A DNA stretch of 64,000 nucleotides. It comes from Macrostomum lignano (lineage: Eukaryota). The translations under genes were made by a program, and so were the position numbers. The first letter of the stretch is position 1. Each line of letters begins with the position of its first letter. Shown here one piece after another: positions 2,018-58,860 of this stretch. The notes under the pieces were generated by a model. The model was not told the DNA's origin. It was given only the letters and a program-made list of their open reading frames with translations, and searched no databases. The stretch is from contig NIVC01000660.1 in NCBI GenBank assembly GCA_002269645.1, positions 372,001-436,000 on the forward strand. The letters are read 5' to 3'.

Positions 2018-2049
2018 ACGGTACATCCCACATCCCTTTAAATAACGAT

Positions 2050-2190: not shown

Positions 2191-2688
2191 TTTGACTTGC
2201 ACTTTATAACTGTGATAATCCTACGTCATAGTTGGCTTAGGCTGTCATTGTTGATATGAGATATGCTTAGTTGTGTAATATAGTGACTAATCATGCTGTC
2301 AATTATTTCAATTATTTTCAAATTTTAACGCTGCAATTTTGCATAATTCTAATCAACTCTGTATTCTGTAGAATTCTTCTGTTGCTTACATTGTCTGTCT
2401 ATGAATTGTGATCTCATTTCTGAGTTAATGAGTCCGAGTCCCGGTTGTAAATATAGTTAGTACGAGGCATGCCACTAACTATTGGTAGCATGTTGTTAAC
2501 AGTTCCCATGCAATTTTTTACAATCTAGTCTTTGTTACGACTTTTAATCTGGTGTATAGAATGCTTAATAAATGAATAAAATCTTTCTTAAAACTAAAAT
2601 AACATTGTGTCCGGTTTCTCTATTATTTTTGTGCTTCTTTCAATAGACATTTAAATGTCTAGGGTTTTGATACTTTTAAATACCCTAG

Positions 2689-3700: not shown

Positions 3701-3719
3701 CCTAGCGAATCCCTAGTTC

Positions 3720-3917
3720 CTAAACTGCTCTAGTCAGGACAGACGTCTGCTGATTTTATTCTGATTTCAACAAAGTAAAGTATTTTTAGCCTAAAAAACA
3801 TGATTTTGATACTTTTAAAAGCATTTTTCAGCAAAAAATGCAAAGAAACTGTTTTATTAGTCTATAATTTTGTCCCTGAAAGTTATCCCCCCTTTTCAAA
3901 ATCCTAGCTACGCCACT
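3720..3917. mobile_element. Probable MITE 3' end interrupting the arrays
   Basis: Ends in CCTAGCTACGCCACTG, the reverse complement of CAGTGGCGTAGCTAGG, a terminus common in invertebrate MITEs; no intact partner TIR seen. Confidence 0.35.
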
Positions 3918-4007
3918 GCTAGGGCTATTTTAGCTCTGAGGGACATTCCTAGAGGTGGTGGGGTTCATTCGAAGGGGTACTTTAGCTCTGATGGGTACAT
4001 TCCCAGG

Positions 4008-4519
4008 CGTATTTTAGCTTTGGGAAGTACATTTCTAGGGGTATTTAAGATTTGGGAAGTACATTTCTAGGGGTATTTTAGCTTTGGGAAGTACATTTCT
4101 AGGGGTATTTTAGCTTTGGGCAGTACATTTCTAGGGGTATTTAAGCTTTGGGAAGTACATTTCTAGGGGTATTTAAGCTTTGGGAAGTACATTTCTAGGG
4201 GTATTTAAGCTTTGGGAAGTACATTTCTAGGGGTATTTTAGCTTTGGGAAGTACATTTCTAGGGGTATTTAAGCTTTGGGAAGTACATTTCTAGGGGTAT
4301 TTTAGCCTTGGGAAGTACATTTCCAGGGGTATTTAAGATTTGGGAAGTACATTTCTAGGGGTATTTTAGCTTTGGGAAGTACATTTCTAGGGGTATTTTA
4401 GCTTTGGGCAGTACATTTCTAGGGGTATTTTAGCTTTGGAAAGTACATTTCTAGGGGTATTTAAGCTTTGGGAAGTACATTTCTAGGGGTATTTTAGCTT
4501 TGGGAAGTACATTTTGCAG
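4008..4519. repeat. 32-bp minisatellite (GCTTTGGGAAGTACATTTCTAGGGGTATTTTA) ending in the PFAS acceptor
   Basis: About 16 copies; the last unit is altered to ...TACATTTTGCAG, the 3' splice site at 4518-4519. Confidence 0.95.
4510..4519 (+). promoter_or_regulatory. 3' splice site opening the PFAS ORF; candidate spliced-leader trans-splice acceptor
   Basis: TTTTGCAG|GCT TAT, phase 0; no in-frame ATG until far inside the conserved domain. Confidence 0.55.
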
Positions 4520-10500: not shown

Positions 10501-12903
10501 AGTGTCGGGTGATGGCTTTAATTAGTGTCAGATGGTGGCTTGAATTAGTGTCAGATGATGGCTTGAATTAGTGTCAGATGATGGGTTGAATTAGTGTCAG
10601 ATGATGGCTTGAATTAGTGTCAGGTGATGGGTTGAATTAGTGTCAGGTGATGGGTTGAATTAGTGTCAGGTGATGGCTTGAATTAGTGTCAGGTGATGGG
10701 TTGAATTAGTGTCAGATGGTGGTTTGGATTTGTGTCAGGTGATGGCTTGAATAAGTGTCAGATGATGGCTTGAATTAGTGTCAGGTGATGGGTTGAATTA
10801 GTGTCAGGTGATGGCTTGAATTAGTGTCAGGTGATGGGTTGAATTAGTGTCAGATGGTGGTTTGGATTTGTGTCAGGTGATGGCTTGAATTAGTGTCAGA
10901 TGATGGCTTGAATTAGTGTCAGGTGATGGGTTGAATTAGTGTCAGGTGATGGCTTGAATTAGTGTCAGGTGATGGGTTGAATTAGTGTCAGATGGTGGTT
11001 TGGATTTGTGTCAGGTGATGGCTTGAATTAGTGTCAGATGATAGCTTGAATTAGTGTCAGATGATGGCTTGAATTAGTGTCATGATGGGTTGAATTAGTG
11101 TCAGATGATGGCTTGAATTAGTGTCAGATGATGGGTTGAATTAGTGTCAGATGATGGCTTGAATTAGTGTCAGGTGATGGGTTGAATTTGTGTCAGATGA
11201 TGGCTTGAATTAGTGTCAGATGATGGGTTGAATTAGTGTCAGATGATGGCTTGAATTAGTGTCAGGTGATGGGTTGAATTAGTGTCAGATGATGGCTTGA
11301 ATTAGTGTCAGATGTCAGTGTCATTAAGTGTCAGATAATGATGATTTGACACTTTCACCGCAGCTGCTGGACAAAGTCAGCCTCGCAGACCTTCGAGAAG
11401 CCTGGGAGCGGCCGTCGCACCAGCTGGAATTGGCTCAGTGCCAGCCGGACTGTGCCAGGTCCGAGCTGCGCTACCTAAGAGAAGCCGGCGGCGCCAATCA
11501 GTACGTTGCCACGGCAACGGAACCCTGCTTGTTGCCAAGCGTTGACCGACTGTTGGCTATGGAACGGCGCTTCACGGTGGCCATCATTCGCGAGGAGGGG
11601 TCCAACGGCGACAGGGAGATGGCCGCTGCCTTCTACGCCGCTGGCTTTCGAGTCTTGGACGTCACCACTGGCGACCTGGCTGCCGACGGCGACGGCGAAG
11701 ACGGGGTCAGCCTAGCCGACTGTCGCGGCGTGGCGTTTGTTGGCGGATTCAGCTATGCCGACGTGCTGGGCTCCGCCAAGGGCTGGGCAGCTCAGGTGAG
11801 AGATGTGCTCACGGCTAAAGTCGAATCCCAAATCCCAATGAAGAAGTATCCCCTATCTTCCCTTTTATCCCAACGGGGAAAACATCCTACAATAATATAT
11901 CTCCCGCTGAACCTAACGGAGAAATATCCCGTTTCTCCCCTTAATCCCAACGGAGAATTATCCCATATCAGTCCTTAATCCCAACGGAGAAATATCCCAT
12001 TTCTCCCCTTAATCCCAACGGATTAATATCCCATTTCTCTCTTTAATCCCAACGGAGAATTATCCCATATCAGTCCTTAATCCCAGCGGAGAAATATTCC
12101 ATATCAGTCCTTAATCCCAGCGGAGAAATATTCCATATCAGTCCTTAATCCCAGCGGAGAATTATCCCATATCAGTCCTTAATCCCAACGGAGAAATACC
12201 CCATTTCTTACTTAATCCCATGTCCTTCATCCAATTTTTAAGTCCCCTTGTCTCTTTCAATTCCCAATGCAAAGCAAGATCCCCACTAATCTCCGCGCAG
12301 GTGCAATTTCATCCCAGCGTTCGTCGCGAACTGGACGCCCTCCGTCGCCGTGGCAACAGTTTCAGCCTGGGCGTGTGCAACGGCTGCCAGCTCATGGCTC
12401 GCATCGGCTGGCTTGACGGCGACTCCGATAGCGGCAGCAGCGACTCCAGCGCCCCGGTGACCTTGGAGCCGAACTTAAGCGGCCGTTTCGAGTCTCGCTA
12501 TCCGACTGTCCGAGTTTTGCCAACTTCTTGTCCGCTGCTTCGCGGCATGTCGGACAGCCGGCTGGGCGTGTGGAGCGCCCACGGCGAGGGCCGGTTCTCG
12601 GTGGCCTCGGCCGACAGCCTGCTAGCGGCTGGCCGGGTGCCGCTGGTGTACGTCGATCAGGCTGGCGAGGCCACAGAGTCGTATCCGTGCAATCCGAACG
12701 GCTCGCCTAAAGGCTTGGCGGCCGTCTGCAGCCCTTGCGGCCGTCACCTGGCGATGATGCCGCATCCGGAGCGCAGCTTCCTCACCTGGCAGTGTCCGGC
12801 TGGACAGCAAGCGTCTACTAATAGTAGTGATGACAATAAGCTGGCGTCGCCTTGGTTTAAAATGTTTGTCAACGCCTACGAGTTCTGCTGCGAGACCGAA
12901 TGA
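4520..12903 (+). CDS. PFAS: Phosphoribosylformylglycinamidine synthase (FGAM synthase, PurL-type), 8 exons, ~1400 aa
   Basis: Exons 4520-5300, 6126-6462, 7190-7709, 8189-8620, 9261-9779, 9904-10476, 11364-11795, 12301-12903; all GT-AG and phase-compatible. Motifs [79 protein letters not shown] (glutaminase Cys), MMPHPER. Confidence 0.97.
5332..6120. repeat. 38-39-bp minisatellite with a 115-bp trimeric higher-order repeat, PFAS intron 1
   Basis: ACGGGATATCCCAAG recurs at 5577, 5692, 5807 and 5922 (spacing 115). Confidence 0.93.
6500..7167. repeat. Compound C-rich array: ~35-bp units, then 28-bp GATCCTCAGTTGCTGGGCCAGCCTCCCA, PFAS intron 2
   Basis: Tandem units; the 28-bp unit and its GAGTGTCAG variant recur reverse-complemented at 60465-61150. 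Confidence 0.95.
7724..8101. repeat. 35-bp minisatellite (GAAGCTGAAATACCCCCTGATTGAGATCTGCTAAT), PFAS intron 3
   Basis: About 11 tandem copies starting ~15 bp after the donor. Confidence 0.95.
8626..9222. repeat. 45-bp minisatellite, PFAS intron 4
   Basis: TGAGAATGGATTGCTA recurs every 45 bp from 5 bp after the donor; the terminal degenerate unit supplies a CTAAT branch-like motif. Confidence 0.95.
10502..11332. repeat. 23-bp minisatellite (GTCAGATGATGGCTTGAATTAGT), PFAS intron 6
   Basis: About 36 copies; many variants contain CAG|GTGA. Confidence 0.95.
11920..12235. repeat. 34-bp minisatellite (CTTAATCCCAACGGAGAATTATCCCATATCAGTC), PFAS intron 7
   Basis: About 9 tandem copies. Confidence 0.9.
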
Positions 12904-19944: not shown

Positions 19945-21848
19945 ATGTCAGTTGAAAGCCGGCGAGTCAAGGAGTGCATCGAGCATATCCGAGCTCTGCT
20001 ATCGTCGCCAGACTTTGCAGACGGGTGCACCACCTCTTTGGAGCTGTGCGAGTTGCTAAGCGATGGCGAGATTCTTTGCAGCGTGCTGGCAGAGCTGAGC
20101 CAAGGACAGGACCTTGCTGAGGTGGCCTACACGTCCTACTACATGCGCAACTCGCAGCTGTTGGCCAGGCGCAATATTCGCAACTTCCTGCGTCAATGCT
20201 GGACCGCATTCGGCACCAGCGAGAAGGAGCTGTTCGAAGTGGACGACCTCGTAGAGATGAACGACCCCGATCGCGTCGTGTGGGTTTTGCACGGCCTGCT
20301 CCAGCGGAGATCGAAAGCTGCTCAATCGCGAGACAGCGGGATCCTGGCCAATGTTGTGCAGGAGATCTGCGATCACGAGAGGCAGCTCACTGAGAAGCTG
20401 CTCAAAGTGCTACTATTTCGCAAAGAACTCCTGGGCATCCTGTCCGAATGGGACGAGGAGCTGGTCGCTGTTGTGTTCAGGTACACTGACCAGCTCTACC
20501 TGCTGCACAAGCAGCTCCACAGCAAGCTCACCGCTCTAGCTTCGAAGGGTTGCGAGCACTTCTGCCAGAACATTTCCTCCGTATTCGCCGGCATGCTGCC
20601 TCGAATTGAAATCTATTTTCAGTATTTTTCGCACCTGCCAACGGCTAATGCTAGATTGAAGGCCGAATTGGAGCGGTTTCCTGAGAAGAACGACCAGTTG
20701 GAGATGCTTGAGAAGCTTATATGTGACCCAAACACCTTTAATTACGTTTACGACGCTCCAATTCGTCAGCTGCCCAACTACCAGCAGCTTTTCATCCGGT
20801 TAGAAAAGACCGCTAAAAAGGAGGCTCCAGAAACTCTGCCATCCGTGTCCAAGGCTCTCTCCGACCTGAAGTCCCTGCTGACAAGGGCCGACGTCTACCA
20901 GAGCGAGGCTCAACAGACTGACGACACCATCGTGGTGCTGTCCGAGGTTACTGGTCTGAAGGCGGAGCTCAGGCAGCCGTCCGAGATCGGGCTGCTGCAG
21001 GCAGACGCGTCGTTTCGTGTTCGCTACCGGCCTCGGGCAGCCAGGGGGAGCGCAAGGAGATCAGAGAGCTGTGCAACTGCATTCTCACAACCAAGTATCT
21101 CTTTGTAGCGTCCAGAGCTACGAAGAAAGATCCTCTGTGCCATTGGATGTCCGTGCCAATGGATCAGGTGCAGGGCGTGAAACGCAAGGACGCGACAACT
21201 CTGGAGATTGCTCTCGAGGCCGGGGCTCGGTTGAAGCTCGAGAAGCACAAGTCACCGCGGGATGCCGACCCGGCTGATTGGATCGAGTTGCTCAATAAGG
21301 CCAAGGCCGACTGTTTCCCAACTGGCTGGGATAAGAACGGGCACGAGTTCAAGCTCACTACATTCTCGTCTGGCACGGAATGCCAGGGCTGCGGCGGTAT
21401 CATGAACGGCACCGTACTGCAGGGCTACCTGTGCAACAACTGCGGCTGCCGTGTTGACCGGGCCTGCTTCGAGGCCCAAGCCAAAAAGAATTGCCAGCCA
21501 CGGCGCATCTCTCAGCCGTCGAATTTTTGTTCGGAAGACTTCTTTCATCGAACAGCGAACCGAGATAGAGCGGCCGAGCTGCTCAAGTACAAAGAGAACG
21601 GCGCCTTTCTAATTCGACCGAAAGGCAGCAGTGATGAGGGCAGAGTGCTGTCTCTCAATGTCTCAGGCGACGTTGTACATATTGAGATACTCCGAAAGGA
21701 CGGCCAGTACGGACTGGGCCTCAACCAGAAGCGCTGGTTCCCCACCATGGAGGGATTGATCAGCTATTATAGAAGTACGAACATGTCTCGTCACTTCAGC
21801 AACCTGAACTGCACGCTGACAAGAGGCGTGCCCCCGACAGCTGACTGA
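19945..21848 (+). CDS. vav: Vav-like Rho-GEF/adaptor (CH-DH-PH-C1-SH2), ~634 aa, intronless CDS with one -1 frame break at ~21044-21048
   Basis: CH (ELLSDGEILC...NIRNFLRQC...ELFEVDDL), degenerate DH (EICDHE; PIRQLPNYQQL), PH split across frames, C1 (HEFK...CQGC...QGYLCNNC), SH2 (GAFLIRP...HIEI). Adding one G to the G5 run fuses ORFs 19945-21108 and 21147-21848. Confidence 0.85.
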
Positions 21849-26640: not shown

Positions 26641-38127
<11,487 letters not shown>

Positions 38128-39113
38128 GACTACTATAAAGCCTAAACAGTAATGCTATATTACTGTTGTATCAGATTCAATAGAAAGTTTTTAGGCTTTA
38201 AATAGATAAACAAAGATAAACTAAAAACTCATAAAATCTTTTCCGCTCTAAGCAAGGAGTATATAAAATGCAGGGATCTGAATTGAAGGACTGTATAGGA
38301 AGCTAAAGCTGGGGTTTTATTGGTTCCTGGTCAAGGGTCCAATCAGGTCATCAAAGTTCAGTGCAGCTTCCTCGATGGCTACTATAGTAGATAGGTCTTT
38401 TAACCCAGGGGGCCATTTTGGATCTATGGGAATGCTTTCTCTTTCAGTATTGTGTCATAAAAATGAGGTTAAACTGTGCGCTGCATAGTATGACACTACA
38501 TGTGCACGCATAGAAAGAATAGATCTTGAATTATGTTCTTCTATCGCACGTACAGGTATGCCTATGACTGGATTATTTAAACAAAAATCTAAATATGCTC
38601 AGAAGCTAAAGATATATATAGACACCATAAGAATTCAGATGTTAGAATTAGCTAGCAAATGTACATGCCAGAAGCAGCATTTATTTGTTAATTTGAGATT
38701 CATTATTCGTAAGTTGTCCTTCCGGCGGACATACGAACTATAATTGGAGGTTTTTTTAGCTTTGTTTACTCTGTGACGATGTCACTTTCTTTATTTCACC
38801 TTTCTTTCTTATCTCGTCTCGTACAGCATAGCATTCGAAATTACACTTATAATTTACTTTCCTTTTTAGCGTTAGCGTATTTTTTGTTATTCCGTATAAT
38901 TCATAGAAATATCCAGCAGTATATAAAATGTATTCGAATCTATTTTACGTGCGCTCGCTCCCTCTCGCTCTCCTTCCCTCACACCGTCTCATTGCCATAC
39001 TACTACGCTACGCTCGTTGCTTTCTATCATATTAAGAGTATAGTAGATTATTATCATTGTGAATTGATTGAAATAAACTCTCAGCACAATCGATCTAAAT
39101 TCGACACAATTTC

Positions 39114-39128
39114 TGGAGGTCCCACCGA
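39114..39128 (+). promoter_or_regulatory. Primer-binding site complementary to the tRNA-Gln 3' end
   Basis: TGGAGGTCCCACCGA is the reverse complement of ...UCGGUGGGACCUCCA, the conserved metazoan tRNA-Gln 3' end, 5 nt after the 5' LTR. Confidence 0.8.
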
Positions 39129-39212
39129 TCAAACCGACTTAGGTCGACTCTGCAATTCCGAGTCCCAGATCACTGTGAGAGGAAGCAGTAGTGATCCACC
39201 GCTGCACTTGTC

Positions 39213-39523
39213 CTGAGTACGTAGAGTACGTGTCTTGAGTACGTGTCCTGATTACGTATCCTGAGTACGTGTCCTGAGTACGTGTCCTGATTACGTATCC
39301 TGAGTACGTGTCCTGAGTACGTAGAGTACGTGTCTTGAGTACGTGTCCTGAGTACGTGTCCTGAGTACGTGTCCTGAGTACGTGACCTGATTACGTGTCC
39401 TGAGTACGTGTCCTGAGTACGTGTCCTGATTACGTATCCTGAGTACGTGTCCTGAGTACGTGTCCTGAGTACGTGTCCTGAGTACGTGTCCTGATTACGT
39501 GTCCTGAGTACGTGTCCTGATTA
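39213..39523. repeat. 13-bp minisatellite (CCTGAGTACGTGT) inside the LTR element
   Basis: About 23 copies. Confidence 0.93.
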
Positions 39524-42510
39524 CGGCCTTCAACTATGGCACCACAGGCGTGCGCTGTCTATCACTGAGTCATCACGTACCCTACCCAGTCTCGCTAGGT
39601 GTTTGCGCGCCCTGAATCGCAGCCTGAATCGCGCTACCTGCTATGCCAGTGTGGTAGTCAGCTTAAGCTGTTAGTTTTTTACTGTCAAGTGCAGATAAGT
39701 TGTTATTTTACATGTATATTGTCCATGTACATATGGCCGCATACATTTTATTTACGCGCGTCGAAGTCTGACGTACTGGTAATTATCGTTTTCTGAACGC
39801 TGCGATTTTCACCTGCGTTTCTTATAACTCCAATTACCTTCTGTACAGACTGCTTTCACTAAGAATTTTGTACTATTCTTAGTTATTTTGTAGTTGCCGT
39901 CACCTAATAAGTTGTGCACGCATTTTAATATAAAAACTGTTTACTAATATTGATTCGCTTATTAATCGTTGTTTGCCCTACTAGCTGAGCGTACAATCTT
40001 CAATTTGACGTTTTGTTCTGAAATTTTTCTATTTACGAGACGTACACTCAACAATATGCTTTTTAAAGAAAACTATATTTTCGCTCTAGGACGTTCGATA
40101 TTCTTTCGATAATTAGTATGCGCACACCCTTCTACTTGTAAGTAGTGTAGCTAACCTCTTTCTGGAAGGAGGCGAGTGTGACGATGTCGCTTTCTTTATT
40201 TCACCTTTCTTTTCTTATCTCGTCTCGTACAGCATAGTATTCTAAATTAGACTTAAAGTTTACTTTCCTTTTTAGCGTTAACGTATTGTTTGTTATACCG
40301 TATATAATTCAAAGAAACATCTCGCAGTACATGTATATAAAATTTATTCGAATCTACATGTATTTTACACGCGCTTGCTCCCTCTCTCGTTCTCCTTCCT
40401 TCACAAATAATATTTGTCAATAATATTCCTTCCGATAATATTAAGAGTAGATTATTATCAATGTGAATTAATTTAAATATATAAACTCGATCAGCATGAC
40501 GCAACGACATCGTTCATTATCATAAATAATCGATCTAAATTCGTCACAACTTATTATATAGTTAAAACTCGTAGTATTCGCTCGCATTTGTGTACTTCAT
40601 TTTTGTGAATCTATCTAAAGAATAAATAATTTAGGCTTTGTTCTAATTCTACTATTAGTATTGCGCAAATTATACCAATTTTCTTATTTATTCCAAATTG
40701 TGTTTGGTATAAACTAGGAAAGTTGAGCTTCCCAGTTTGGACACAGAATGTACACAGAAATAAAGTTGAGCTCGCATAATTTATATCATATATAGGGAGA
40801 CGAACGAGAAAAGAAAGACAGGAAGAATGAGACAAATGGACTAAATTTCTCTGTGTTAGATATGCTGTCCTCAGCTTCCGTAAATCAATAATGAGCAATG
40901 CCGGAACGAAAATAATCAATTACTAGCACATTTAAACAAAAAAAGCAAAAAAATGAAACACGAACAATTAGGGGGTTGTTCTATTTAAAGCTAGTTATAA
41001 TTTAACAAATTATAATCCAACAGTAAAAAATATGCTGCAAAAAAGCATTCAAACAATAGTTTTCATCGCAAAAGTTTGATTTCGTATCTACGATCTCATT
41101 TACTTTTCAACCACGCTATATCAGAAAAGAAACTACGAGCTAAAAATAATTGTCAGTTTGTTTTATACGTTTCTGTCTTCAAAAAAGGGTTCAATGGGCA
41201 CTAAATATTTTGACATTTCTTTTAACAGAATTCAAAAGAAGCCGAATTATATGTCCTTAATATTTAGCTGGCTATACATACATATTAAATCGCATGTTTT
41301 AATGCAAGCCCGATGAATGCTTTATATGTACACAGTTAATTATAAACTGGTTGTCTGTTTCTCAAAAAAGCATCGAATTAATATTTCTTTCTTGAAACCA
41401 TTTATTTATACTTTTTCTATAAACCCCAGAGCATATTAGAACTTTTCAAAAATAATTCACATCTAGTAAAGCAAGGCGGATTTAAACATTTTTATTGACA
41501 ATCTACAGTTTAAAGTTTAAAATGAAATAAAGTTGTGTAGATCATCATTTATTTTTGGTAAAAAAACCTCGAAATAGAGTTTTTAATGCTCTTTTCTCGT
41601 GTCGTCAATGGTATATCTTTATGTAACTAAGAAGCTTGAAAATCTAAAAAAGTGTTTATTTAATTTTATTATAAAATATAGACCTATAATACCCAGCTGG
41701 CCACCTGGCCTATGGAAGATGAACGAAGAATTTTTTAATGAAACCTAATATAAAGGCCATGAAGTAGAAAATGAGTAATCAGTAGTAAACAACGTTTTTA
41801 CTAACCTAAAATTGCGTTTCTTTGTGATGCTACAAATGTTGAGGTCTTGGAAAGTTGAATTCTTAAGCTACATGAATGCCTTTGTAATTTGTAATTTTTT
41901 TGTATTTTCAGTCTATAAAGCATGAATGTGATTGTTTCGAAGAACAAGTTGTAGCTACTTAATTTATAATGTGTCCAGATATATCTAGCTTTTATATATA
42001 GTCCGAGCCTAAAAGATACATAGCCCTCACGGACAGCTAAAATCCGATGATGCATCATTGGCACATCGTGCAGATTTTCACAGGTTTTCAACTTTAATAA
42101 ACACTAAATTGACAAAAAATATTCCACTTAGAAGTACTGAACTTTAAAGTTTGAGGACAGATTGTTAGGAACGTGGTCAAAAATATATCTGTTGCTCTCT
42201 AAAACGGATTTTGCAAAAATTCGCTTTGTTACTTCACGTTAGCTAGGGTTTTAACCATAGACAAACTCAAATTCATTTGACATCTAGACAGTATAGAGGG
42301 CCGAAGCCATTTTTAGCAGCGAAAACGGGCCTCCAGCGAAATTCACACGATATGCTAATGCAAATTCCTTCTGCCCAATTCCGGAATAGTCAGTGAGAGT
42401 ATTTTATAGAGTTTTCCCACGGTAAATTTTGGCGACTAACTTGAATTGCTCGTTAACAAAATGTTTGGAAAATCTAAGCTTTGCTCAATGGATGCCTAAA
42501 AATTTCAGTC

Positions 42511-45500
42511 ATGGATGCTCATTTCGCCAGCTTGGACTTGAAGTCCCAGACAAACGACAGTGACAATGAACTTTTAACATACTATGACCAGCACTTCCCG
42601 GCTGCGAATCTTACCCAGAAAGACGTAGAAAATGTTCTGCGAGCAATCTGCGACTGCATGGCCAAGGGGCCGGGTTTTTGGCCGAAAAGACATTCTCCCG
42701 GATACTATTGTGTGCTGAGAACGATCGTGCATATGCGGGATGCAGTGTAAGACAACTGAGATCTATGCTGGCTGAGTCAGACACCTGTGGCATATGCTGG
42801 TTGAGTCAAACTCATGGATAGTAGAGTGAGAAACCTGGGGTAGTCGTAGTAGAGTGAGAAACCTGGAATAGTAGAGTGAGACACCTGGGATAGTAGAATG
42901 AGACACCTGGGATAGTAGAGTGAGACACCTGGAATAGTAGAGTGAGACACCTGGAACAGTAGAGTGAGATGCCTGGAATACACTCAGCAATATTTAAAAC
43001 GCAACACTCTAACTAGAAGAAAAATCAACTCACTCAGAAGAGTCAAAGCGCATAGTCTATGGTTCAAATCGAGCTTCAGAAACGCGTGTAGCTTCCTCTC
43101 GCAAGTAACAGGGCGATGACTATGGACTGTTTTCAGATAGAGTGATCCAGCTGAGAGAATGGTTCAACAGATGACAGACGCGTAAAGATGGCGAGCAGTC
43201 GGAACGAGCCAGCGCAGAGCACAGATCACTTGGTTGTTGATGATTGCCTCGAATAACTTTGAGCAGTGTTAGATACTCGTAACTTGGGATTAGAATCTAC
43301 GAGCCGTAACTAACTCAACTAACTCATCTCTTATGCAATTTTCAGCGACGAAGTTGCACTAGAAAACACGGAGGAAATCCAGGCGCTCTACCTGGACTAC
43401 GTCAGTCACGGCGGGGCGGAGTACGACGAGATTCGATCCTATTGGGCCTTCGCCCTCGGCTGCCTGGGCAGGAAGCTGGAGAGCAGCCAATCGGCTCCTA
43501 TGAGTTCGTCAATTGTTCATGTAAATAAATGACAGTTTGTTTGCTTAAGGTTGATTTAGGGAACTAATTAATTTAGTGCTTAGAAAATGTCTTTATCTTG
43601 CTCATACATTTTCGGGTCTCCAGTGGAATTTCCACGATATTTTTGCGCATCGTCCTTTTACTCTAAGTGGTCAGAGGCTTGATAACAGACTCAGGTTCTA
43701 ATAGTCCTAATTATTTTATATTCAAGTATATTGCTCTGGTATGCTGTATAATCTACGAAATTTCAGTTCTACGCCAAAGACGACGCCTTCATGCGACGGC
43801 TAATCGGAGCCTTGGATTCGGCAGCCAGTTCGGACCTGTCAGATGATGCCGCTGATAGACTCGACAGAGTCGTCACGAGCTTCGGCTCGGCGCTTTGGTG
43901 AGGCTAAAAAGCCAGAATTTGAACTGGTTCCAAAAGATGCTGTATCACAGTACGCTGTAAGAGTTGGGCCCGGCACTGCACTCTTAAGGCCGGTTTACAT
44001 TGCCCTCAGTAGCTTAGCGGCCAAAGATGGCTCAAGTCAATACACAGTTGGTTCGGATAGCAATTACGCGTGAAAAAAAGTAAAGACACTTGCCATGGTA
44101 TACAGTAAGTTTTATTGAGAAGGCGATGGCGCTAATCGTGAGCGGTCGTACGCTCGTCCGTTAGGAGACCCTTTTTAAGTTAAGTTTAGCTACGAGTACA
44201 ATCACGCCCCTATTCAGAACCAATGAGATGCATGTAGACTGAGAAGTGCAGTTTTTTATTCTAAGTTTTATGCATTCGGCACATATAATGACTCATGTTC
44301 AATTGTTCTATGACACACAGCGCCACAAAGGACGTCGATTTCAAGTACCTGTTCAACGATGCCTACCAAGCATGCTTCAAGCTGTTGAGCAACAAAAAGA
44401 CGTCGAAGTCAGGCGGTTTTTTTCTGCGACGCCTCACTGAATTGGCAATTAGCAAGAAATATACACTGGCGGTGAGTACACGAGGCCGAGCATTCAGTAG
44501 GAACTCATACGGTATTTTGAAGAGTTGGCTAGGATTGCAACAGGTATAAGGTCATCTAAAGAACAGGCAAATCTGTTCTCGGTGATAAAAAAAAACCCAC
44601 CTACACAAGAGACTAAGATCGCCGGGCTTAACTTGCTTCTTAAAATCAAAGCGACAGTCGAACTGCAAGTCAGTGAGGAAACAAGAAACAAGCACTAACC
44701 CTGACTTTTCTTTTGGCCTACAGGGCCCACTGCCTTGCGATTTATGCCAGTTTCCAAGAATTAACTCCAAAATACTCGTACTAGACTAAGCACCTACTCT
44801 TTTATTAGTAGTTCGTCTGCGCATTGTCATTTAAATTTTGGCAGCTCAAGTGTCTTTTCCTTCATGGTCTGCGGCTTCAGAGCGTATGGGTTGAGAATTA
44901 ACAACACAGTTATATGAACAATAATAAACAACTCACGAAACTCAGCCTAGGGGGCAGGCCCAATCTGGCTTAGCCAATGAGAGAGCAGTAAGGAGAGAGG
45001 TAAAAGTCAGACGGACGAAACTTTCAGCCTAGGGGGCAGGCCCAATCTGGCTCAGCCAATGAGAGAGCAGTAAGGAGAGATGTAAAAGTCAGACGGACGA
45101 AACTTAGCCTAAGGGGCAGGCCCAATCTAACTCAGCCAATGAGAGAGCAGTAAGGAGAGAGGTGAAAGTCAGACACAAGCGGGCAAGAAGAAAGCCAAAA
45201 TATGTGTCGGCCTGGCTGGGGGCTGCTGGGGGCTGCTGGGGCGCTGCCCTTCTCTCTCTTGCTTGCTATGCACACGCACTGGATTCGGGTTTTTAAATTT
45301 TCCTGCAATCCTCACTCATAAATAAGTTATCTATTGAAATAACTTCAAGGCTGAGACAGTCTGGAGTCAGCAAAACAGGCTAGGTTAATGGGTCTGCTTT
45401 TAGAAAACCAGAGGCGATGATTGCATATCGAGCAAACTGTAATAAATTTTCAACTCTGCTCTTATAAATATTCATTAATGTGTTTTTAAGCTATTAGAAC

Positions 45501-48500
45501 ACTTTTATTGAAGCTCGAGTCTTCAATGGGCAATAAAACTCGTTCTAACTTTCAGGACACATCAAGCCTTAGCGAGTTGGTCTCGGGCAAAGCTAACATC
45601 GACCTCATCATGCAACGTCCCAATAAATCAGATGATGAGGAGTTGACACCGGAGGACGAGATACTCAAGGAGGCTCGATACGAGCTATTCCAAAAACTGT
45701 TGCCAAGTGCTGCAACTGCAGTTGAGGACATGGCCTCGTGCATGCCGTTGTATGTAAAGCTGCTGAGCGTGTCCTTCAAGCAGTTTGTCGAAAGCATTGA
45801 AAAAATGTACTTTGACAATGCTAAGCTGAAGCTCATTCAGTTGAACGCTGCAGTGAGTTTGATAATATTACCTTTTTGCATCCTTGTCGTTTTGTTCCCG
45901 AGGTTCGACCCCCAGTTTTAGTGTATAGCAGCGTTAAATTAGGTTTACTACTGAACTACTGAAAGTAAAAATACTTTTTTTGTACTCAACAAAAAACTTT
46001 TTCAGAAATTTCAACCGGCTTTCATTTTGTTCATCGAAGAGTGCGCCAACGCTCTGACAAAACTAGACGAGTCTGTGCCCGAGGACAAGCAGGGTGACCC
46101 GTTGATATACGGACCGGTGCAAAAGCTGGCTTCCATTCTGGAGAAAATGATTGAAAAGCTTTAGTAAGTGATGGATGCGATAGTACGAGTAGTGTTTCTA
46201 TGTCAGTGAGGTTGATAGTTAAGCCCTAATCATGTCGAGAGTGTGTGAGAGTCGATTCGATTTGCTTGATTACAAGCCACGCTTCAACTTGACTGACCCT
46301 ACTGGAGTCCTTGATATAGTTATCTACTTTGCGGTTTGTAGTATCTTTGAAAGAATTATTCGATATTCGAAACTGATTTATTGTTTTAGCAAATCACCCG
46401 GCAAGAAGATCGTGCATGAGAAAGTTACCCAGGCAAAGCTGTTTGAAGTCATGCAGAAGATGGTGTCCAGTCGAAGTCTTTGCCTTCTCGGCGCAATACG
46501 TGGCTTTGACAAGGAAATTTTCAACTGGCCGGCGCTGCAAGATCGTTTTCAAGAAAATCTGGATATGCTTGAGGCATTTCTGAATGATAACTTCACTACT
46601 ATTGAGAGCGTGCACTACGGTATCGGGTTCGCCGTGATCCCGGTAGACTTCATCTTGTTTATGATGTGAGAAGCATTAAAGCCATGTTTTATCATCTGCT
46701 TTCCGCATCCTAAGTAAAGGTGGGGTATTCACAGATGAAGTGCTCTACATTGTCAACACTGGAGCGATAGAACTGGCATTCCTCACTGCGGATTTCCCCT
46801 AGAGGTAGCAATGCCTAGCGAAGCAGCCATGACCTGGGAGGGCTATGGTTACCGCCCTGACATCCCTGCGGTTGAGTCCAAGCAAGGGCCCGAACAGGAC
46901 AGGGCCGGTTTTTGAGTCCCTACACGTAGTCAAGGCTGAGTCAGGAACTCATTACATATACTTTAAGTACTACAAGAGATTCCATTCAAAATCTTTTTGC
47001 TACTCTTTAGTAGTATAACTTCCTACTTACTATACCACTCTTCTACTTTAAATTTCTGGCAAAAAAGTTTTTGACAGCTTCAGAAATACCTATATTCTGT
47101 CCACCGTAGAAAAAGCAAGCCACCTACTGTGTGCAAGAGTATGGAAAGTCTTCGCAAGATTATCGAAACCTGCTTAACTAGCGACATCATGGTGACAATG
47201 ATGAGTGGGTCGGAAATTCTGTCTGCCGAGGGTCTCGTATTGATCAATCTACTCAGCAACCTGATGTCGGCAACTAGTGTTCAGACGGTAAATCTTCATT
47301 CGTCCTTACAATCCGTTCCTTGATGTGCGCCAGACCCCCCAAATATGACCAATTTCTAAAATGTAAACTTGCCAACCAACTGCTATGCAAATTCCTATGC
47401 CCAAAGCTTTACATACCGCTGCCAAATTGTCAGATGCTGCCTATCAACAAAGAGCTCTACCCGCTGTACGTCAGCATGTGCCGGAAAACCAATGAGTATC
47501 CCGAGTCTGGCACAAGTGGAATAATGATTGGTCTGACAACCTGCCTCGGCTACAGCCCGGATACGGTTTTCCAGTTTCTGCCGCATTTTCCGCTTCTGTT
47601 GGAATTTCTACAGGAGCAAAAGACTGCGGGCTCTCAGATGTTTGGAGCATTGTTTGTGGGACTGTTGCGTGAGTAAATGCACAAACATTTTTTGACTCGA
47701 AAAACTAAATCTAAATCTAAACGATAATAGTCATTCCTTAAAAAAAACTTTTGCGAGCAGAATGCCTGCAACTGTCAGCGAAAACGGAGATTCCGGATCA
47801 ACTAGCCAGCCGAGTCGACCAGCTAATCAGCCTAAGCGAGGGAGAAGACACCGTGCAAGTACAGATGGTTCAGTTCATTGGGACTGTCTGCAAACTTAAC
47901 AGCGCCAAATCTGCCGAAAAGATGCGAGATTATCTGCTAAGCTTTCTGCAAGGTCCATACGCCGCTATTGCGCTGGGTGGCCTCGCTTCCCTAGCAGAAA
48001 ATCAACCGCAGGTGATGTCAGGAGCCTTAGACCAGCTGGTGACGACAGCGATATCTAACATCGATCTTGTAGCACTCATAATTACTACCATTGATAAAGG
48101 AAAGTTTGAAGCACCAAAACTAATGACGTCCATGTGTGAGATTGTGAATCATCACCTTGCTCAAGACTCAGAGGCTAACAAGCTCACCAGCTGTCTCGCG
48201 CTGATGCGACGTGTCGGAGTCGACAGTCCGCAGCTGCTGGCCGAGCGAGAGTCCGACATCAAGCGCTGGAAGTCGAGCCCGGCTCTGCTCGACGCCTGCA
48301 ACCACCTGCTCGATGTGATCGCAAACCGCTCGCTCGTCGGTCTGGAAGGCCAAATCACCGACCAGAGCGACAAGATCGGCGGACTTGAGCGAGACTTGAG
48401 CGACACCGGACACAAAGTCGACGAGGTGTCGGGTCGCGTAGACGAGACCAGAGACGAGCTCGGACAAGTTCGGGGCAGAGTGGACGCGACGGAGGGCCGC

Positions 48501-50441
48501 GTGGATGAGCTGAATGTCGCTGTGGGCGTGCTGGGCGAGAAGGTCGAGGAGATCGATCTCAAGGTGAGTCGCTGAGTCGAAGCCTACAGCATGCTCATAT
48601 GGTTGATAAAGAAGCCAATTCGCAGTTACAACTCCACTACAGACTCTGAGCGCGGCTCCTGCGTGGTCTCGCGAAGTGTCCCGACTGATGAACCCGGAGT
48701 CCGACACTGACTGGCGACTGCTGGCTCAGAGACTGAACTTCTCGGCAGACGACATTCGAGCATGGGCCACAACTGCGGACCCGTGTATGAGTATGCTGGC
48801 CGAGTTCTACACAAACAACCGAGCAGCGGAAGCGTCCAAGGCTGTGCTGCAGCAGCTCAAGGAGATGAACCGTCTTGACGCAGCGGCCATTGTCGAGGCG
48901 TCCATTCTGAACGCAGGTGAGTAGCTGAGCTTGAATAGAGACCACTCGTTGCTCAATTGAATAACTGATACTACAACAGAGTTCTCTGCTCACCGCTTCC
49001 ATTCAGAGTCCGCTGCCTCCGACGACCCGGTCGAGTTCACGGCGCCTCGCAACGTCTTCCTCAGCTATCAATGGGGCCACCAGGCCGAGGTGAAGATGCT
49101 CAAGCAGCACCTGGAGAAGGCCGGGTATCGCTGCTGGATGGACATTGGCCAGATGGGAGGAGGAGACAAGCTGTTCTCGGCCATCGATGCTGGAATTCGG
49201 TCAGCCAAGGTGGTCATTGCGTGTGTGACAGACAAGTACTCCAAGTCGGACAACTGCAGACGAGAGGTGAGCCTGTTTGAGCTCATCTTTGCGGTAGAGT
49301 AGATGCATGCTCACACATACATGCCGCGCTTATCTCCAATTTGCAGCTGAACCTGTCCGTGTCGCTGAACAAGCACCTGATCCCGGTGCAGCTCGAGCGA
49401 GTGTCTTGGCCTCCGGAAGGAGCCATGGGACCTCTGCTGACCGAGTACCTGTACATCCGCTTGTTCGATCGGAGCGGCAAGGCGTCCGGCTCTGGCGGAG
49501 TGTTCTGGCCGCCGGACAAGTTCATGGAGCTGCTGGTTCAGATCCGGTTGGCCGTGGCGCCCGACTACGACTCGGTGAGTGCAGAGTACGCGAACTGGTG
49601 GCAGCCGCCCAGCGCCGACGAGACCATCGTGCTGCCCGACCGGAAGGAGGCCTCCAAGACGGACGCCAAGGCCAAGACGAGCTCGGCCTCGACCTCGGCC
49701 GACAAGTCCGACTCGGCGGACAGCCGCGACGCTCCGCCAGCCGCTCCGCAGGTGTTCCTGTCCTACCAGTGGTCCAAGCAGTCAGAGGTGAAGGCGCTCT
49801 ACTCTCGACTGTGCAGTCTCGGCTTCACCTGCTGGATGGACATCTTCCAGATGGGAGGCGGCGACTCGCTCTACGAGAAGATCGACCGCGGAGTTCGCGG
49901 CTGCAGCGTCGTTGTCGCCTTCGTCACTCCCAAGTACGCCGCCTCGCCCAACTGCAGGCGAGAGGTGAGCCTCGCCGACGCCGTCCGCAAGCCGATCGTT
50001 CCGGTGATGCTGGAGAAGATGGCGTGGCCGCCCGAGGGTCCGATGTCGATGCCGCTCACGCAGCTCATCTACGTGCAGATGTACAAGGACGCGGAGGACC
50101 AGCTGACGTGGCGCGGCGAAAAGTTCGAGGAGCTTCACGCCAGACTGCGGCAGATTGTGCCGGCGCCTGCGGCAGAGGCGGCGGCTGGTGGGCAGGCGAA
50201 GAGCGGAGCTGAGGCTGCGGCTGGTGGGCAGGCGAAGAGCGGAGCTGAGGCTGCGGCTGGTGGGCAGGCGAAGAGCGGAGCTGAGGCGGCGGCTGGTAGG
50301 CAGGCGAAGAGCGGAACAGAAGCTGCAGAGGCTGGGGGTGGCGGGCCTGCGAGCCTGCCTCCACTGAGCGAGAAGAAGCGGGAGAAGCTGGCAAGGGTGC
50401 AGAGCGCCGCTGGTCGCTCCAAGACATGCGAAATTCTCTGA
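42511..50441 (+). CDS. Large helical-repeat (ARM/HEAT-like) + coiled-coil + Death + TIR + TIR + CaaX protein, ~1500 aa
   Basis: Inferred exons 42511-42746 (or alternative 43159-43181), 43346-43520, 43767-43897, 44321-44471, 44501-44668, 45556-45852, 46006-46163, 46390-46619, 46735-46804 (needs +1 nt), 47078-47287, 47434-47668, 47758-48563, 48643-48916, 49007-49266, 49347-50441. Death DWRLLAQRLNFS; TIRs VFLSYQW...CWMDI.QMGGGD.L...NCRRE; ends CEIL-stop. The 3' half is secure; the 5' exons are less so. Confidence 0.82.
42800..42980. repeat. 22-bp minisatellite (GTAGAGTGAGACACCTGGGATA)
   Basis: About 8 copies in the putative first intron of the TIR gene. Confidence 0.88.
44940..45195 (+). repeat. 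~81-bp CCAAT-containing unit x3; dispersed element with an inverted copy at 51170-51335
   Basis: GGGGCAGGCCCA..CTCAGCCAATGAGAGA.CAGTAAGG..GTCAGAC repeated three times; GTCAGACACAAGCGGGCAAG shared with the reverse complement of 51170-51192. Confidence 0.85.
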
Positions 50442-55900: not shown

Positions 55901-57933
55901 GGCGCCAGACACATCAAGACTAACGCGCCAGATTCGTTTTGGCGCCGCAGACGAAGATAACTCGTCTAGCGCTAATAGAGGCGCTAAATATGTGGCGCCG
56001 CCTCCGCCGATGGCACCGGGCGGTCGACCGAAAGCGCCGCCAGCGCCGCCGTCGCCGCACAACTCCGAATCGGCAGCATCGGCAGCATCAACAGTTACGG
56101 AAGCGGCTCCATCGTCAGCCGGATGATCAACCAGGCTGAGGTAGCGAGCCGGCAGCGGTGGGACAGCCAGGCTGGCCTCGTCTGGCCACGCAACACCCTC
56201 GAGATCATCGCCGAAAACCTATAGGAACGCGAGCAGAGCAGAGGAAATCTTTGTGTCGGAATAATGGCTTGATAATGGTGTGGCTGCGGGGCAAAGCGTC
56301 TTCGCTCGCGCATCAACACCCACTTGGTTTGAATCCGCGGCCACATTAATTTGGGGCTTGTGTGCTCGAAAATTGACCGTGGAGGTTGTCGTGCGGTCAT
56401 GCAGGCCCACCCTCCAAGGCATATGGAGATGTACATGCCTGACGATTGGGAAGTTTTAAGGGCTGCTGTACACCCTGTGTGAGTGCGTGCCTGCGAACAG
56501 TATTGGCGCTTGTGTGCCCAGGAGTCAGCGCAATGGGCAGAGTTGATTCATGCGAAGGGTGCACACAGACCTCCTGCAAGTATACTCTACAGCCAGTTTG
56601 CTCTAAATGACCCTCGTTAGGAGTCGCATTCTTAAACGAGCACAATACATTGATTGGTTTCTGTACTTCGCTGAGCCAGGACGATAAGCCGTTCCTATTA
56701 GAGACAGGGGGCTGCGTGCATTCTGGCCCACTTCAAGCGACATTGGCACACAAGCGCTCGGATACGTACGCAGTCACACGCACAGGCACACACTCACACA
56801 GAAGTGTACAGCGGCCCTGACTTTATTTATCGTTAGGCATGTACACTTCACTGTGCCTTTGGGGTTGGCCAAGCCGGGATTCCATCCAATCCATATACTA
56901 AAAATGACTGCACTTGGATTCGAGCCTGGACCGCTGGTACATCAGAGCGCCGCGCTGGACTACCAGGCTACGGGACAACCTGACAAAATTTCGTAGACAA
57001 ACACTACTTGGAAGACAAGTTCTATTTAACACACTTCACAAGACTCGATTCACATTCTTACCATGCTACTCTTCAGTAGGCGATCTCTTCCTAGACACAG
57101 AATAATAAAAACTCAAATCGGAGTTCTTGACGCTAAAAGTATTTTCAGGGAAGGATTTTGAAGGAATAGACACATCGGGAAGTGACTGCGACCCTGGAAA
57201 TGCACTTAGACAGACGATCACACGGAATGTTACAGCAGACCTGACTTTCTTCTCATGGCCCTAATGTCAAGAAGCCCTACATACTCATAGGCCGATGTTC
57301 GTGCATTAGACCAAAACAATTGTAAGCAGCACTCACTGGGCCATCGTCGGAGTTATCGCAGCCAATGTCCGCATTGATATCAAGGGCACCAGATCCAGCA
57401 CCTGTCAGACTAATACCAGCCATATTATCAACAATCTTAGCGTCGTCTTTAACGTCAGAAGCGGCATCGGCGGCAATCAAAGCATCCACAGCTGGCCAGA
57501 GTCGCTCTAGAAACGGTCCAACAGTGAGTTCCAAGCCGACCGCATCGTCAGCCAAAGCGGTTGGCAGAAACAGTTCGGCGCCCAACGATTTAAGCTTAGT
57601 CTCAATGGTTTGCGGGCATTTGCCAAAGCTAGTGTAGTTGGTATCGCCCAGGCCTAGCAAAGAGAATCGAATATGGCTGTAGGCATCGGCTGGCAGATCC
57701 GACCGGCTCAGCAGGCGCACAAATTTAGCCGCATTATCCGGTGCGTCCCCATCGCCAGTGGATGAACACACTATGATAAGCCGACGGACAGTTGCTAGGT
57801 CTAACTGTTCGTTGCAGGTGCGCAGTTCAACGCGAATCTTCGGTCGAGTCTGCAACTCCGAAGCGATGTCCTCTGCGATGGCCTGCGCTTGGCCAGTCTG
57901 ACTGCCGTAGAGAATGTGCCAGGTGGCCGGCAT
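52969..57933 (-). CDS. MTRR: Methionine synthase reductase (diflavin reductase), 5 exons, ~701 aa
   Basis: Exons 57933-57337, 56218-55593, 55129-55010, 54328-54023, 53425-52969, phase-compatible. FMN domain ILYGSQTGQAQAIA, SSTGDGDAPDNA, GLGDTNY; PPLPARYL linker; PRLQARPYS; IGPGTGCAP; GCR; VCGDATGMAKDV; EDVWS-stop. Lacks the membrane anchor of P450 reductase. Confidence 0.9.
53590..53895. repeat. Degenerate polypurine (GGAGA/GAGAG) repeat, MTRR intron 4
   Basis: Almost entirely A/G on the + strand. Confidence 0.88.
54358..54710. repeat. 23-24-bp minisatellite (GGCCGATTCTGGGACGGGTTTTT), MTRR intron 3
   Basis: About 14 copies. Confidence 0.92.
55173..55510. repeat. 22-bp minisatellite (GATTCTCAATGTGAATCAGGGG and variants), MTRR intron 2
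   Basis: About 15 copies with stepwise variant gradients. Confidence 0.92.
56300..56580 (+). mobile_element. SINE family A, diverged copy in MTRR intron 1
   Basis: CACATTAATTTGGGGCT...CCTCCAAGGC...TGTACATGCCTGACGAT...GGGCTGCTGTACAC...GGGTGCACACAG. Confidence 0.65.
56703..56975 (-). mobile_element. SINE family A with the best-preserved tRNA-like head
   Basis: Reverse complement: CCGTAGCCTGGTAG (A-box-like), GGCTCGAATCC (B box), central hairpin, 3' CCCCCTG. Confidence 0.75.
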
Positions 57934-57989
57934 GACTTGTTTCAGTATGCGATAATTTCGCTTCCTTAGCATCAACGGCGTCAGGGTCT

Positions 57990-58860
57990 GCTTTCTGCAC
58001 TGGGTGGGACTGACTGACTGACTGACAAGGGCTGACTGACTGACTGACTAACTGACTGACAAGGGCTGACTGACTGACTGACAAGGGCTGACTGACTGAC
58101 TGACTGACTAACTGACTGACTGTGTGACTGACTGACTGACTGACAAGGGCTGACTGACTGTGTGACTGACTGACTGACTGGCTGACTGACTGACTGACTG
58201 ACTGGCTGACTGACTGACTGACTGACTGACTGGCTGACTGACTGCACTGAAGGGCTGACTGACTGTGTGACTGACTGACTGACTGTGTGACTGACTGACT
58301 GACTGACTGACAAGGGCTGACTGACTGACTGGCTGGCTGACTGACTGACTGACTGACTGACTGACTGACTGACTGACTGGCTGACTGACTGCACTGAAGG
58401 GCTGACTGACTGTGTGACTGACTGACTGACTGACTGACAAGGGCTGACTGACTGACTGACTGGCTGACTGACTGACTGACTGACTGACTGACTGGCTGAC
58501 TGACTGACTGACTGACTGGCTGACTGACTGCACTGAAGGGCTGACTGACTGTGTGACTGACTGACTGACTGACTGACAAGGGCTGACTGACTGCACTGAA
58601 GGGCTGACTGACTGTGTGACTGACTGACTGACAAGGGCTGACTGACTGTGTGACTGACTGACTGACAAGGGCTGACTAACTGACTGACTGACTGACTGAC
58701 AAGGGCTGACTAACTGACTGACTGACTGACTGACTGGCTGACTGGCTGACTGACTGACTGACTGACAAGGGCTGACTAACTGACTGGCTGACTGACTGAC
58801 TGGCTGACTGACTGACTGACTGGCTGACTGACTGACTGACTGACAAGGGCTGACTAACTA
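57990..58860. repeat. (TGAC)n tetranucleotide microsatellite, ~870 bp, with AAGGGC and TGTG interruptions
   Basis: Begins ~60 bp upstream of the MTRR ATG. Confidence 0.96.

Follow-up and report, generated by a model that had tools for sequence, protein, structure and literature searches.

A twin-TIR, Death-domain protein of Macrostomum lignano with a predicted prenylation signal: a candidate membrane-anchored TIR enzyme from a widespread invertebrate family

The gene described here lies at 42511-50441 on the plus strand of a 64-kb stretch of Macrostomum lignano contig NIVC01000660.1 (hereafter the window; all coordinates are positions within it). Its predicted product of 1422 amino acids (aa) combines a long N-terminal region, a coiled coil, a Death domain, two TIR domains, and a C-terminal tail that ends in a CaaX box, and judged by its sequence the gene is a clear member of an uncharacterised, widespread invertebrate orthogroup. 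On sequence and model evidence the protein may be a lipid-anchored, clustered twin-TIR enzyme that cleaves nicotinamide adenine dinucleotide (NAD+) or a related nucleotide and is regulated by its solenoid, a reading to which I give about an even chance. The interest of the family is that a strongly conserved candidate combining enzyme-type TIRs, a Death domain, and a lipid-anchor signal has been kept in animals without Toll-like receptors (TLRs).

Thirteen exons joined through canonical GT..AG introns give a frame that stays open up to a single terminal stop, and throughout the 4.3 kb of coding sequence there are no internal stops or frameshifts and every splice site is intact. The product of 1422 aa results from the acceptors at 47434 and 49007, which were adopted as in the annotated sister proteins of the same species. 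The first-choice acceptors, 47407 and 48980, are in frame too and would give 1440 aa, but they differ from the annotated sister proteins and were rejected. A prokaryote-like reading of the region as separate open reading frames (ORFs) was also dropped, since the plus-strand frames are short and change at GT..AG boundaries. The features of the gene are as follows.

42511..50441, plus strand: whole gene, 13 exons, product of 1422 aa
42511-42746, 43346-43520, 43767-43897, 44321-44471, 45556-45852, plus strand: exons 1-5
46006-46163, 46390-46665, 47110-47287, 47434-47668, plus strand: exons 6-9
47761-48563, 48643-48916, 49007-49266, 49347-50441, plus strand: exons 10-13
42511..47668, plus strand: distal N-terminal region (exons 1-9), ~610 aa, Leu-rich, with no recognisable domain and fast-evolving
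47763..48353, plus strand: proximal alpha-solenoid, 197 aa, first part of exon 10, ARM/HEAT-like fold
48354..48563, plus strand: coiled coil, 70 aa (ITDQSDKIGG...EKVEEIDLK), hydrophobic residues at 3-4-7 spacing
48643..48916, plus strand: Death domain, exon 11, Pfam PF00531 at E=1.8e-8
49051..49556, plus strand: TIR domain 1, Pfam TIR_2 (PF13676) at E=4.9e-19, Glu codon GAG at 49264-49266
49749..50159, plus strand: TIR domain 2, Pfam TIR_2 (PF13676) at E=3.6e-24, Glu codon GAG at 49962-49964
50175..50315, plus strand: 12-aa linker repeat (AEAAAGGQAKSG), a 36-bp unit present 3.9 times (Tandem Repeats Finder, 97% matches)
50370..50441, plus strand: basic patch (EKKREKLARVQSAAGRSKT), CaaX box CEIL, and stop

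Every feature that a first-pass annotation of this DNA had listed was found at the position given there. It had described twin TIR domains that keep the Glu of an NCRRE motif, and both codons are indeed GAG and lie in two separate TIR_2 matches. The Death domain it had placed in exon 48643-48916 is recognised there by PF00531, the coiled-coil peptide it had quoted lies at 48375-48515 within the 70-aa segment of 3-4-7 spacing, the 12-aa repeat linker corresponds to the 36-bp unit, and the basic patch and terminal CEIL-stop can be read directly from the DNA.

TIR domains of enzymatic type in a widespread family

The 449-aa Death-TIR-TIR module has 207 relatives, and those that carry organism names belong to bivalves, gastropods, Capitella, Dimorphilus, rotifers, a bryozoan, sea urchin, sea cucumber, hemichordates, and amphioxus. 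At their best the matches reach 45-57% identity across 100% of the 449-aa query and represent at least eight phyla, with the TIR domains ~60% identical between flatworm and amphioxus; among the matches that carry organism names, none is from a vertebrate or an ecdysozoan. Members such as Saccostrea LOC134260086, Lottia LOTGIDRAFT_102305, Capitella CAPTEDRAFT_72501, Branchiostoma Bbelb_281210, and a Rotaria 'TIR domain-containing protein' illustrate the family, in which orthologs share the order solenoid end, coiled coil, Death, TIR, TIR, low-complexity tail, and CaaX. The junction into the Death domain ('...EEID-K-T-L/M-S-x-A-P-x-W') is conserved as well, and a helical stretch lies upstream of the coiled coil.

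The first-pass annotation had left the novelty of this architecture undecided. It turned out to be a widely conserved database family, yet one for which no published characterisation was found, and its entries go by no name other than 'uncharacterized' or 'Death domain-containing protein'. A literature search returned no characterisation of the family and nothing on Mlig018443, although the ecTIR-DC catalogue of Gerdol et al. 2017, which was outside this search, may list the architecture; the family may equal one of the 'ecTIR-DC' families there. The term 'twin-TIR', where it was found in the literature, refers to TLRs with two TIR domains and not to the Death-TIR-TIR family. Several animal TIR clades have never been characterised, according to a 2026 TIR atlas preprint (PMC13142454).

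Both TIR domains score 69-86 bits against TIR_2 versus just 16-17 bits against PF01582, which is under the cut-off of the latter. An alignment of 22 sequences covering both TIRs has a mean column identity of 61%, and C71 and E74 of the S-x-N-C-x-x-E motif are invariant in it, as are D33, G38, and G40 in the BB-loop region; the orthologs in this alignment thus keep the Glu in both of their TIRs. In the window gene an intron (49267-49346) splits TIR1 directly after the Glu codon, which is the last codon of its exon. TIR2 of the window shares 53-65% of its residues with other TIR2s, against 30-48% with TIR1s. By sequence, TIR1 and TIR2 are each orthologous across phyla, so the TIR duplication is to be regarded as old. 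As a separate observation, a few paralogs (three rotifer or other homologs) have Gln or Lys in place of the Glu, be it in one TIR or in both, which points to a loss of the Glu-dependent function in some copies.

Searching the PDB with a family TIR profile gave 39 matches, including Cat1 (3e-9), human SARM1 (2e-7), PdTIR, AbTIR, SPARTA TIR-APAZ, TcpB/BtpA, and Roq1. Nearly all of them are TIRs of proteins described as NAD+-cleaving, or bacterial and plant relatives of these, the exceptions being two bacterial SEFIR-domain entries, and no TIR of MyD88, MAL, or a TLR was matched below E=0.01 in this search. In the printed profile alignments the family Glu coincides with the SARM1 'HKE' Glu (taken here as E642) and with its counterparts in Cat1 and PdTIR. 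Modelled with AlphaFold2 (predicted local distance difference test score, pLDDT, 86.6), TIR2 gave a concordant ranking in Foldseek: SPARTA TIR-APAZ (1.1e-6) and human SARM1 (1.4e-6, 22% identity) came first, followed by AbTir and RPS4/plant TIRs, and the scaffold TIRs of IL-1RAcP and Hydra TRR-2 ranked lower. On these profile and model comparisons, both TIRs look like the NAD+-cleaving (TIR_2/enzymatic) type and may act as enzymes.

The modules around the TIR pair

The gene ends in TGC GAA ATT CTC TGA (50427-50441), which reads CEIL-stop and is preceded by EKKREKLARVQSAAGRSKT, with seven Lys/Arg within the 20 residues upstream of the box. CEIL fits the CaaX pattern with a Cys at -4, an aliphatic a2, and X = Leu. 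The box is kept across the family: 94 of the 106 homologs with an intact C-terminus (extending past TIR2) end in C-x-x-X, where X is L in 48, M in 27, I in 8, and S in 8, and it is mostly preceded by a basic or Ser-rich K/R-S-K/R-S/T stretch. The 12 exceptions without a CaaX box include visibly truncated models, for instance ones broken off inside or just after a TIR. The CaaX conservation in orthologs that the first-pass annotation had proposed as a check was therefore found. The tails leading up to the box are unrelated low-complexity sequences with a median of ~90 aa. As a candidate second membrane signal, amphioxus has KKKKKSKTCSIL, and some orthologs carry an extra Cys (CCIL, CCCIFI).

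C-a-a-L boxes are recognised by geranylgeranyltransferase I and C-a-a-M/S boxes by farnesyltransferase, and a polybasic stretch provides a second membrane signal for prenylated proteins. The C-terminal Cys is thus a probable prenylation site, with X = Leu pointing to geranylgeranylation here and X = Met, as found in rotifer orthologs, pointing to farnesylation. A literature search found no description of a C-terminal prenylation signal on any TIR protein. Between TIR2 and this tail, the linker forms a low-complexity, flexible tether; the annotated sister protein BOX15_Mlig018443g1 has more linker repeats, including variant units, than the 3.9 of the window copy, and since the copy number differs between gene copies the length of the tether is, at the sequence level, polymorphic.

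Upstream of the TIR pair, the coiled-coil segment gave weak Pfam coiled-coil matches (DUF7310, DUF1664, laminin), and its pattern is kept in the ortholog alignment. The Death domains of the family align with a mean column identity of 66%, and their profile matched p75NTR (1.3e-7), NRADD (4.6e-5), UNC5 (2.3e-4), and MyD88 (8e-4) in the PDB. By this profile it is a genuine Death domain that is closest to p75NTR/NRADD and not specifically of the MyD88 type.

The N-terminus was far more difficult to place. The 810 aa upstream of the coiled coil had no match in a Pfam, NCBIfam, or PDB sequence search, a word-based homolog search with the full protein and with the N-terminus found two Macrostomum proteins only, and an exhaustive phmmer search with the exon-10 solenoid (197 aa) against 1.84 billion representatives returned only Macrostomum and two short fragments. 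Profile comparison reached further: in hhalign, residues 703-957 of BOX15_Mlig018443g1, essentially exon 10, matched the N-termini of mollusc and rotifer orthologs with a probability of 84-97%. AlphaFold2, run on the 197 residues with a 16-sequence alignment, produced an all-helical stack of 11-13 helices (pLDDT 87.5; predicted template modelling score, pTM, 0.82). The good Foldseek matches of this model were all of ARM/HEAT type (template modelling score normalised to the query, TMq, 0.5-0.66), the best being a CLASP2 TOG domain, beta-catenin, designed armadillo proteins, importins, and PP2A B56.

Two descriptions in the first-pass annotation consequently stand in part. Of its roughly 1000 aa of helical N-terminus, helices are modelled in the last 197 residues, and the length before the coiled coil is 810 aa here. 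Its term 'ARM-like' is, as far as the model goes, correct as a fold class for the 197 of 810 residues modelled, which lie next to the coiled coil, and no match ties them to the ARM domain of SARM1 in particular: homology to that domain was sought without a Pfam ARM match, a PDB sequence match, or a fold match among the top 50 (197 of the 810 residues being modelled).

Only the last ~250 aa of the N-terminus can be aligned between phyla, and over the distal ~650 aa no similarity could be detected between the rotifer and flatworm proteins. A tandem duplication in a stretch extracted from Rotaria sp. Silwood2 contig CAJNUA010002060.1 consists of a 1392-aa model (1719-9266 of that stretch) followed by a 5'-truncated 778-aa copy (10001-12524). 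Identity between the tandem Rotaria copies rises from 54% through 75% to 89% from N- to C-terminus, and because of this gradient the N-terminus is, by sequence comparison, the fastest-changing part of the protein. Such rapid change would fit a sensing or regulatory surface.

Proposed mechanism, alternatives and gene copies

TIR enzymes are active only when their TIR domains pack against each other. In the proposed mechanism, the C-terminal Cys would be prenylated, with a geranylgeranyl group where X = Leu, and the lipid together with the basic patch would hold the twin TIRs at the cytosolic face of a membrane on a flexible tether. The coiled coil, and possibly the Death domain too, would gather several chains, and the paired TIRs could then build the active sites between TIRs on which such enzymes depend. 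There, the conserved Glu would cleave NAD+ or a related nucleotide, leading either to NAD+ depletion or to a signalling nucleotide, and the variable solenoid would serve as the sensing or restraining part. Oligomerisation, catalysis, and a regulatory role of the N-terminus are thus plausible properties of the protein, and its setting may be immunity, cell death, or an injury response. Autoinhibition and the recruitment of Death-domain partners, both suggested in the first-pass annotation, may belong to the same scheme.

Several observations weigh against this enzymatic scheme. At position -4 to the Glu, at least 90% of the family sequences have Asn (N70) versus Trp in Cat1, and SARM1 in the profile alignment, as read here, has Trp at this position too. 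The Trp four residues before the Glu is considered important in SARM1 and AbTir. A conserved Glu is also not sufficient for activity: Dictyostelium TirB and TirD keep it and yet do not cleave NAD+ (PMC13142454). The solenoid matches, with E about 0.03, are at the level of fold class only, and the SARM1 ARM domain is not in the top 50 of them. Furthermore, the window copy lacks two exons found in its sister copies (see below) and may not be a fully functional allele. Finally, a Death domain and a TIR are also the make-up of a pure adaptor.

This last point leads to the alternative that survives best, namely a non-enzymatic, membrane-anchored adaptor whose TIRs would do no more than dock on other TIR proteins and whose Death domain would nucleate a Myddosome-like, kinase-recruiting assembly. 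It shares its Death and TIR domains with MyD88, whose Death domain is a detectable relative (E=8e-4), and membrane tags are established for the TIR adaptors TIRAP and TRAM, a part that the prenyl tail would take here. The change from Trp to Asn near the Glu could mean that the nucleotide pocket was lost, and the Dictyostelium proteins illustrate that Glu-bearing TIRs can be inactive. However, M. lignano, other flatworms, and the bdelloid rotifer sampled, Rotaria tardigrada, are reported to have no TLRs to adapt (PMC8609888, Table 1), and the family persists in each of these lineages; the absence of TLRs from M. lignano therefore argues against a MyD88-like adaptor role. Likewise, an adaptor would not be expected to have PDB profile neighbours at E<0.01 that include NADase TIRs and leave out those of MyD88, MAL, and TLRs, or to rank SPARTA and SARM1 above IL-1RAcP and Hydra TRR-2 in the fold search. 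Across phyla, neither the Glu nor the BB-loop glycines vary in either TIR, and the Death domain is nearer to p75NTR than to MyD88. Taken together, I consider an adaptor without enzymatic activity unlikely, if still worth serious attention.

SARM1 is the one well-studied animal TIR enzyme. If the enzymatic reading holds for the family as a whole, the latter would constitute a second, independent animal lineage of nucleotide-cleaving TIR proteins, prenyl-tethered, with an intramolecular TIR pair, assembly through the coiled coil and Death domain, and a solenoid sensor. I put this forward tentatively, with somewhat less than even confidence; by sequence, Spiralia, echinoderms, hemichordates, and amphioxus all retain the family, TLR-less animals among them. 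Should the proteins be active, animal TIR signalling through NAD+ or nucleotides would reach beyond axon degeneration, and the family would supply a TIR enzyme that sits at membranes and brings its own TIR pair, informative on how TIR active sites assemble. Macrostomum, in which RNA interference and regeneration assays are routine, would then be a tractable test system. Should they be inactive, they would still represent an undescribed type of lipid-anchored adaptor.

A different concern is whether the window copy itself is an intact gene. Its product is 95% identical to two M. lignano proteins, BOX15_Mlig018443g1 (1518 aa, ending in CNVL) and UniProt A0A1I8I651 (1401 aa), and at least three other near-identical M. 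lignano products are known besides the window copy. The window is colinear with the BOX15_Mlig018443g1 locus (NIVC01000073.1) over 36200-50429 at 94-98% identity, and it is therefore, on this alignment, an allele or a recent duplicate of that locus that the window holds. Two small exons (~90 aa, KNHKEW...MLDNLS), which both sister copies carry and which lie at 10744-10908 and 10998-11132 in the extracted stretch of NIVC01000073.1, are absent from the window copy between its exons 1 and 2. The deletion relative to the sister locus is ~1.1 kb, in frame, and within intron 1 (42747-43345), where a 22-bp tandem repeat present six times (42847-42980) lies at the site; a tblastn search of the window for the two missing exons found no trace of them.

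The loss of ~1.1 kb with two exons, the tandem repeat at the site, and the existence of at least three further near-identical products are what one might expect of a decaying or non-functional duplicate among several near-identical copies. Nevertheless, the loss is in frame, the coding sequence and its splice sites are intact as described above, and the 21 coding differences to the sister locus give a ratio of nonsynonymous to synonymous substitution rates (dN/dS) of 0.18, albeit from small counts, whereas the colinear blocks including introns and flanks are 2-5% diverged. Because the loss is in frame and because of the low dN/dS over these 21 differences, the window copy has no sign of decay in its sequence and is seemingly under constraint, which makes a decaying duplicate improbable.

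The copies differ in further details. An 8-aa indel (TSSASTSA) in the linker between TIR1 and TIR2 distinguishes them, and at the junction of exons 7 and 8 (46619-47110) the sister donors differ, with BOX15_Mlig018443g1 reading ...IPVDFILFMIKNK... and A0A1I8I651 ...IPKNK..., which reflects either alternative splicing or a difference in prediction. The sister locus has an exon-1-like open frame at 20740-20976 of its extracted stretch (38% identical, E=7e-14), ~1.9 kb downstream of the gene; no such frame was found downstream of 50429 in the window, and the colinearity of the two loci ends at the 3' end of the gene. The intron between exons 4 and 5 (1084 bp) contains an 82-bp unit present three times with 93% matches (44935-45174), and a 10-bp repeat lies near it at 45215-45247.

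The first-pass annotation had treated the region as a single gene, and this reading was upheld. The N-terminus and the Death-TIR-TIR part are one gene as far as sequence can tell, because the sister models in both NCBI and UniProt join the two parts and because orthologs in rotifers reach the same length. Ortholog models mostly run to just 480-780 aa, but their shortness is, at least for rotifers, apparently a product of annotation: rotifer loci hold either a long model or upstream exons, and the model from Saccostrea breaks off where its contig ends. Besides the 1392-aa Rotaria model, a second rotifer contig has same-strand exons of 198 aa and ~320 aa directly upstream of a 'short' gene, which would bring the sequence before the Death domain to ~900 aa. 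In the 10 kb upstream of a Mytilus gene, no similarity to the long N-terminus was found. That prediction has falsely fused two neighbouring genes, one for the long N-terminus and one for the coiled coil-Death-TIR-TIR part, might be argued from these many short models and from one M. lignano UniProt entry that begins exactly at the Death exon, but it is very improbable given that a single exon (47761-48563) encodes both the solenoid end and the coiled coil, that canonical splice sites preserve the frame at all junctions between exons 1 and 13, that two independent annotations make the same join, and that the short rotifer and Saccostrea models have the explanations just given.

The rest of the window contains three ordinary animal genes that are unrelated to the twin-TIR gene, and long open frames in repetitive, skewed sequence.

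4514-7748, plus strand: pieces of an FGAR amidotransferase gene
19945-21848, plus strand: Vav-like CH-RhoGEF-C1-SH2 protein
26641-27741, minus strand: TMEM26
29916-30950, plus strand: long open frame in repetitive, skewed sequence
32520-34622, minus strand: long open frame in repetitive, skewed sequence
57277-58668, minus strand: long open frame in repetitive, skewed sequence

The repetitive frames had weak Pfam matches to repeat families (DUF7290, beta-roll) or none, one of them encodes VSQSVSHTVS-like repeats, and they are probably satellite or low-complexity DNA and not genes. A second copy of the twin-TIR gene was sought in the window and none was found; a 366-aa minus-strand ORF equal in length to the last exon had been considered as such a copy, and it is TMEM26, the match in length being a coincidence.

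Comparison with known systems

Within its own orthogroup, the window copy stands apart by the two missing N-terminal exons and by having fewer linker repeats than BOX15_Mlig018443g1. The first-pass annotation had called the protein SARM1-analogous and its architecture unlike that of either MyD88 or SARM1. The latter statement was borne out, there being no SAM domains and two TIRs that are not of the scaffold type. The analogy holds at the level of logic and does not extend to SAM domains or to a sequence or specific fold match with the SARM1 ARM domain.

Like SARM1/TIR-1, the protein has a helical-repeat N-terminus, a predicted oligomerisation element, and an enzyme-type C-terminal TIR with a Glu at the 'HKE' position, and the TIR profile match to SARM1 (E=2e-7) reaches through a shared W-P motif after strand D. 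Unlike SARM1 (ARM-SAM-SAM-TIR), it has a coiled coil and a Death domain in place of the SAMs, two TIRs versus one, and Asn instead of Trp at position -4 to the Glu, and similarity to the ARM domain was not detected by sequence or specific fold. I know of no CaaX tail in SARM1. Pfam scans of the window exons and of full-length BOX15_Mlig018443g1 found no SAM domains, and because of this, membership of the SARM1 family fails on sequence grounds.

With MyD88 the protein shares a Death domain followed by a TIR in one cytosolic protein, and the MyD88 Death domain is the detectable relative mentioned above. It differs from MyD88 in its two TIR_2-type TIRs, to which the MyD88 TIR was not matched, and in its long N-terminus, coiled coil, lipid-anchor signal, and TLR-less host. 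With two TIRs, neither of scaffold type, the protein is by sequence not a member of the MyD88 family either.

TIRAP/MAL, with a phosphoinositide-binding motif, and TRAM, with N-myristoylation, are both lipid-tagged TIR sorting adaptors. In general terms, the present protein resembles them as a TIR protein placed at a membrane through a lipid or basic tag, a signal that is only predicted here, and it departs from them in that the tag is a C-terminal prenylation signal. The tail itself, a basic patch followed by C-a-a-L/M, is built like those of K-Ras4B and Rho GTPases, although there is no GTPase domain. The prokaryotic TIR NADases (Cat1, SPARTA TIR-APAZ, AbTir, PdTIR) differ from this animal multi-domain protein with its Death domain and prenylation signal, and identity to them is only 15-22%; even so, it is among them that both TIRs have their closest matches in sequence and fold, and the Glu and BB loop align.

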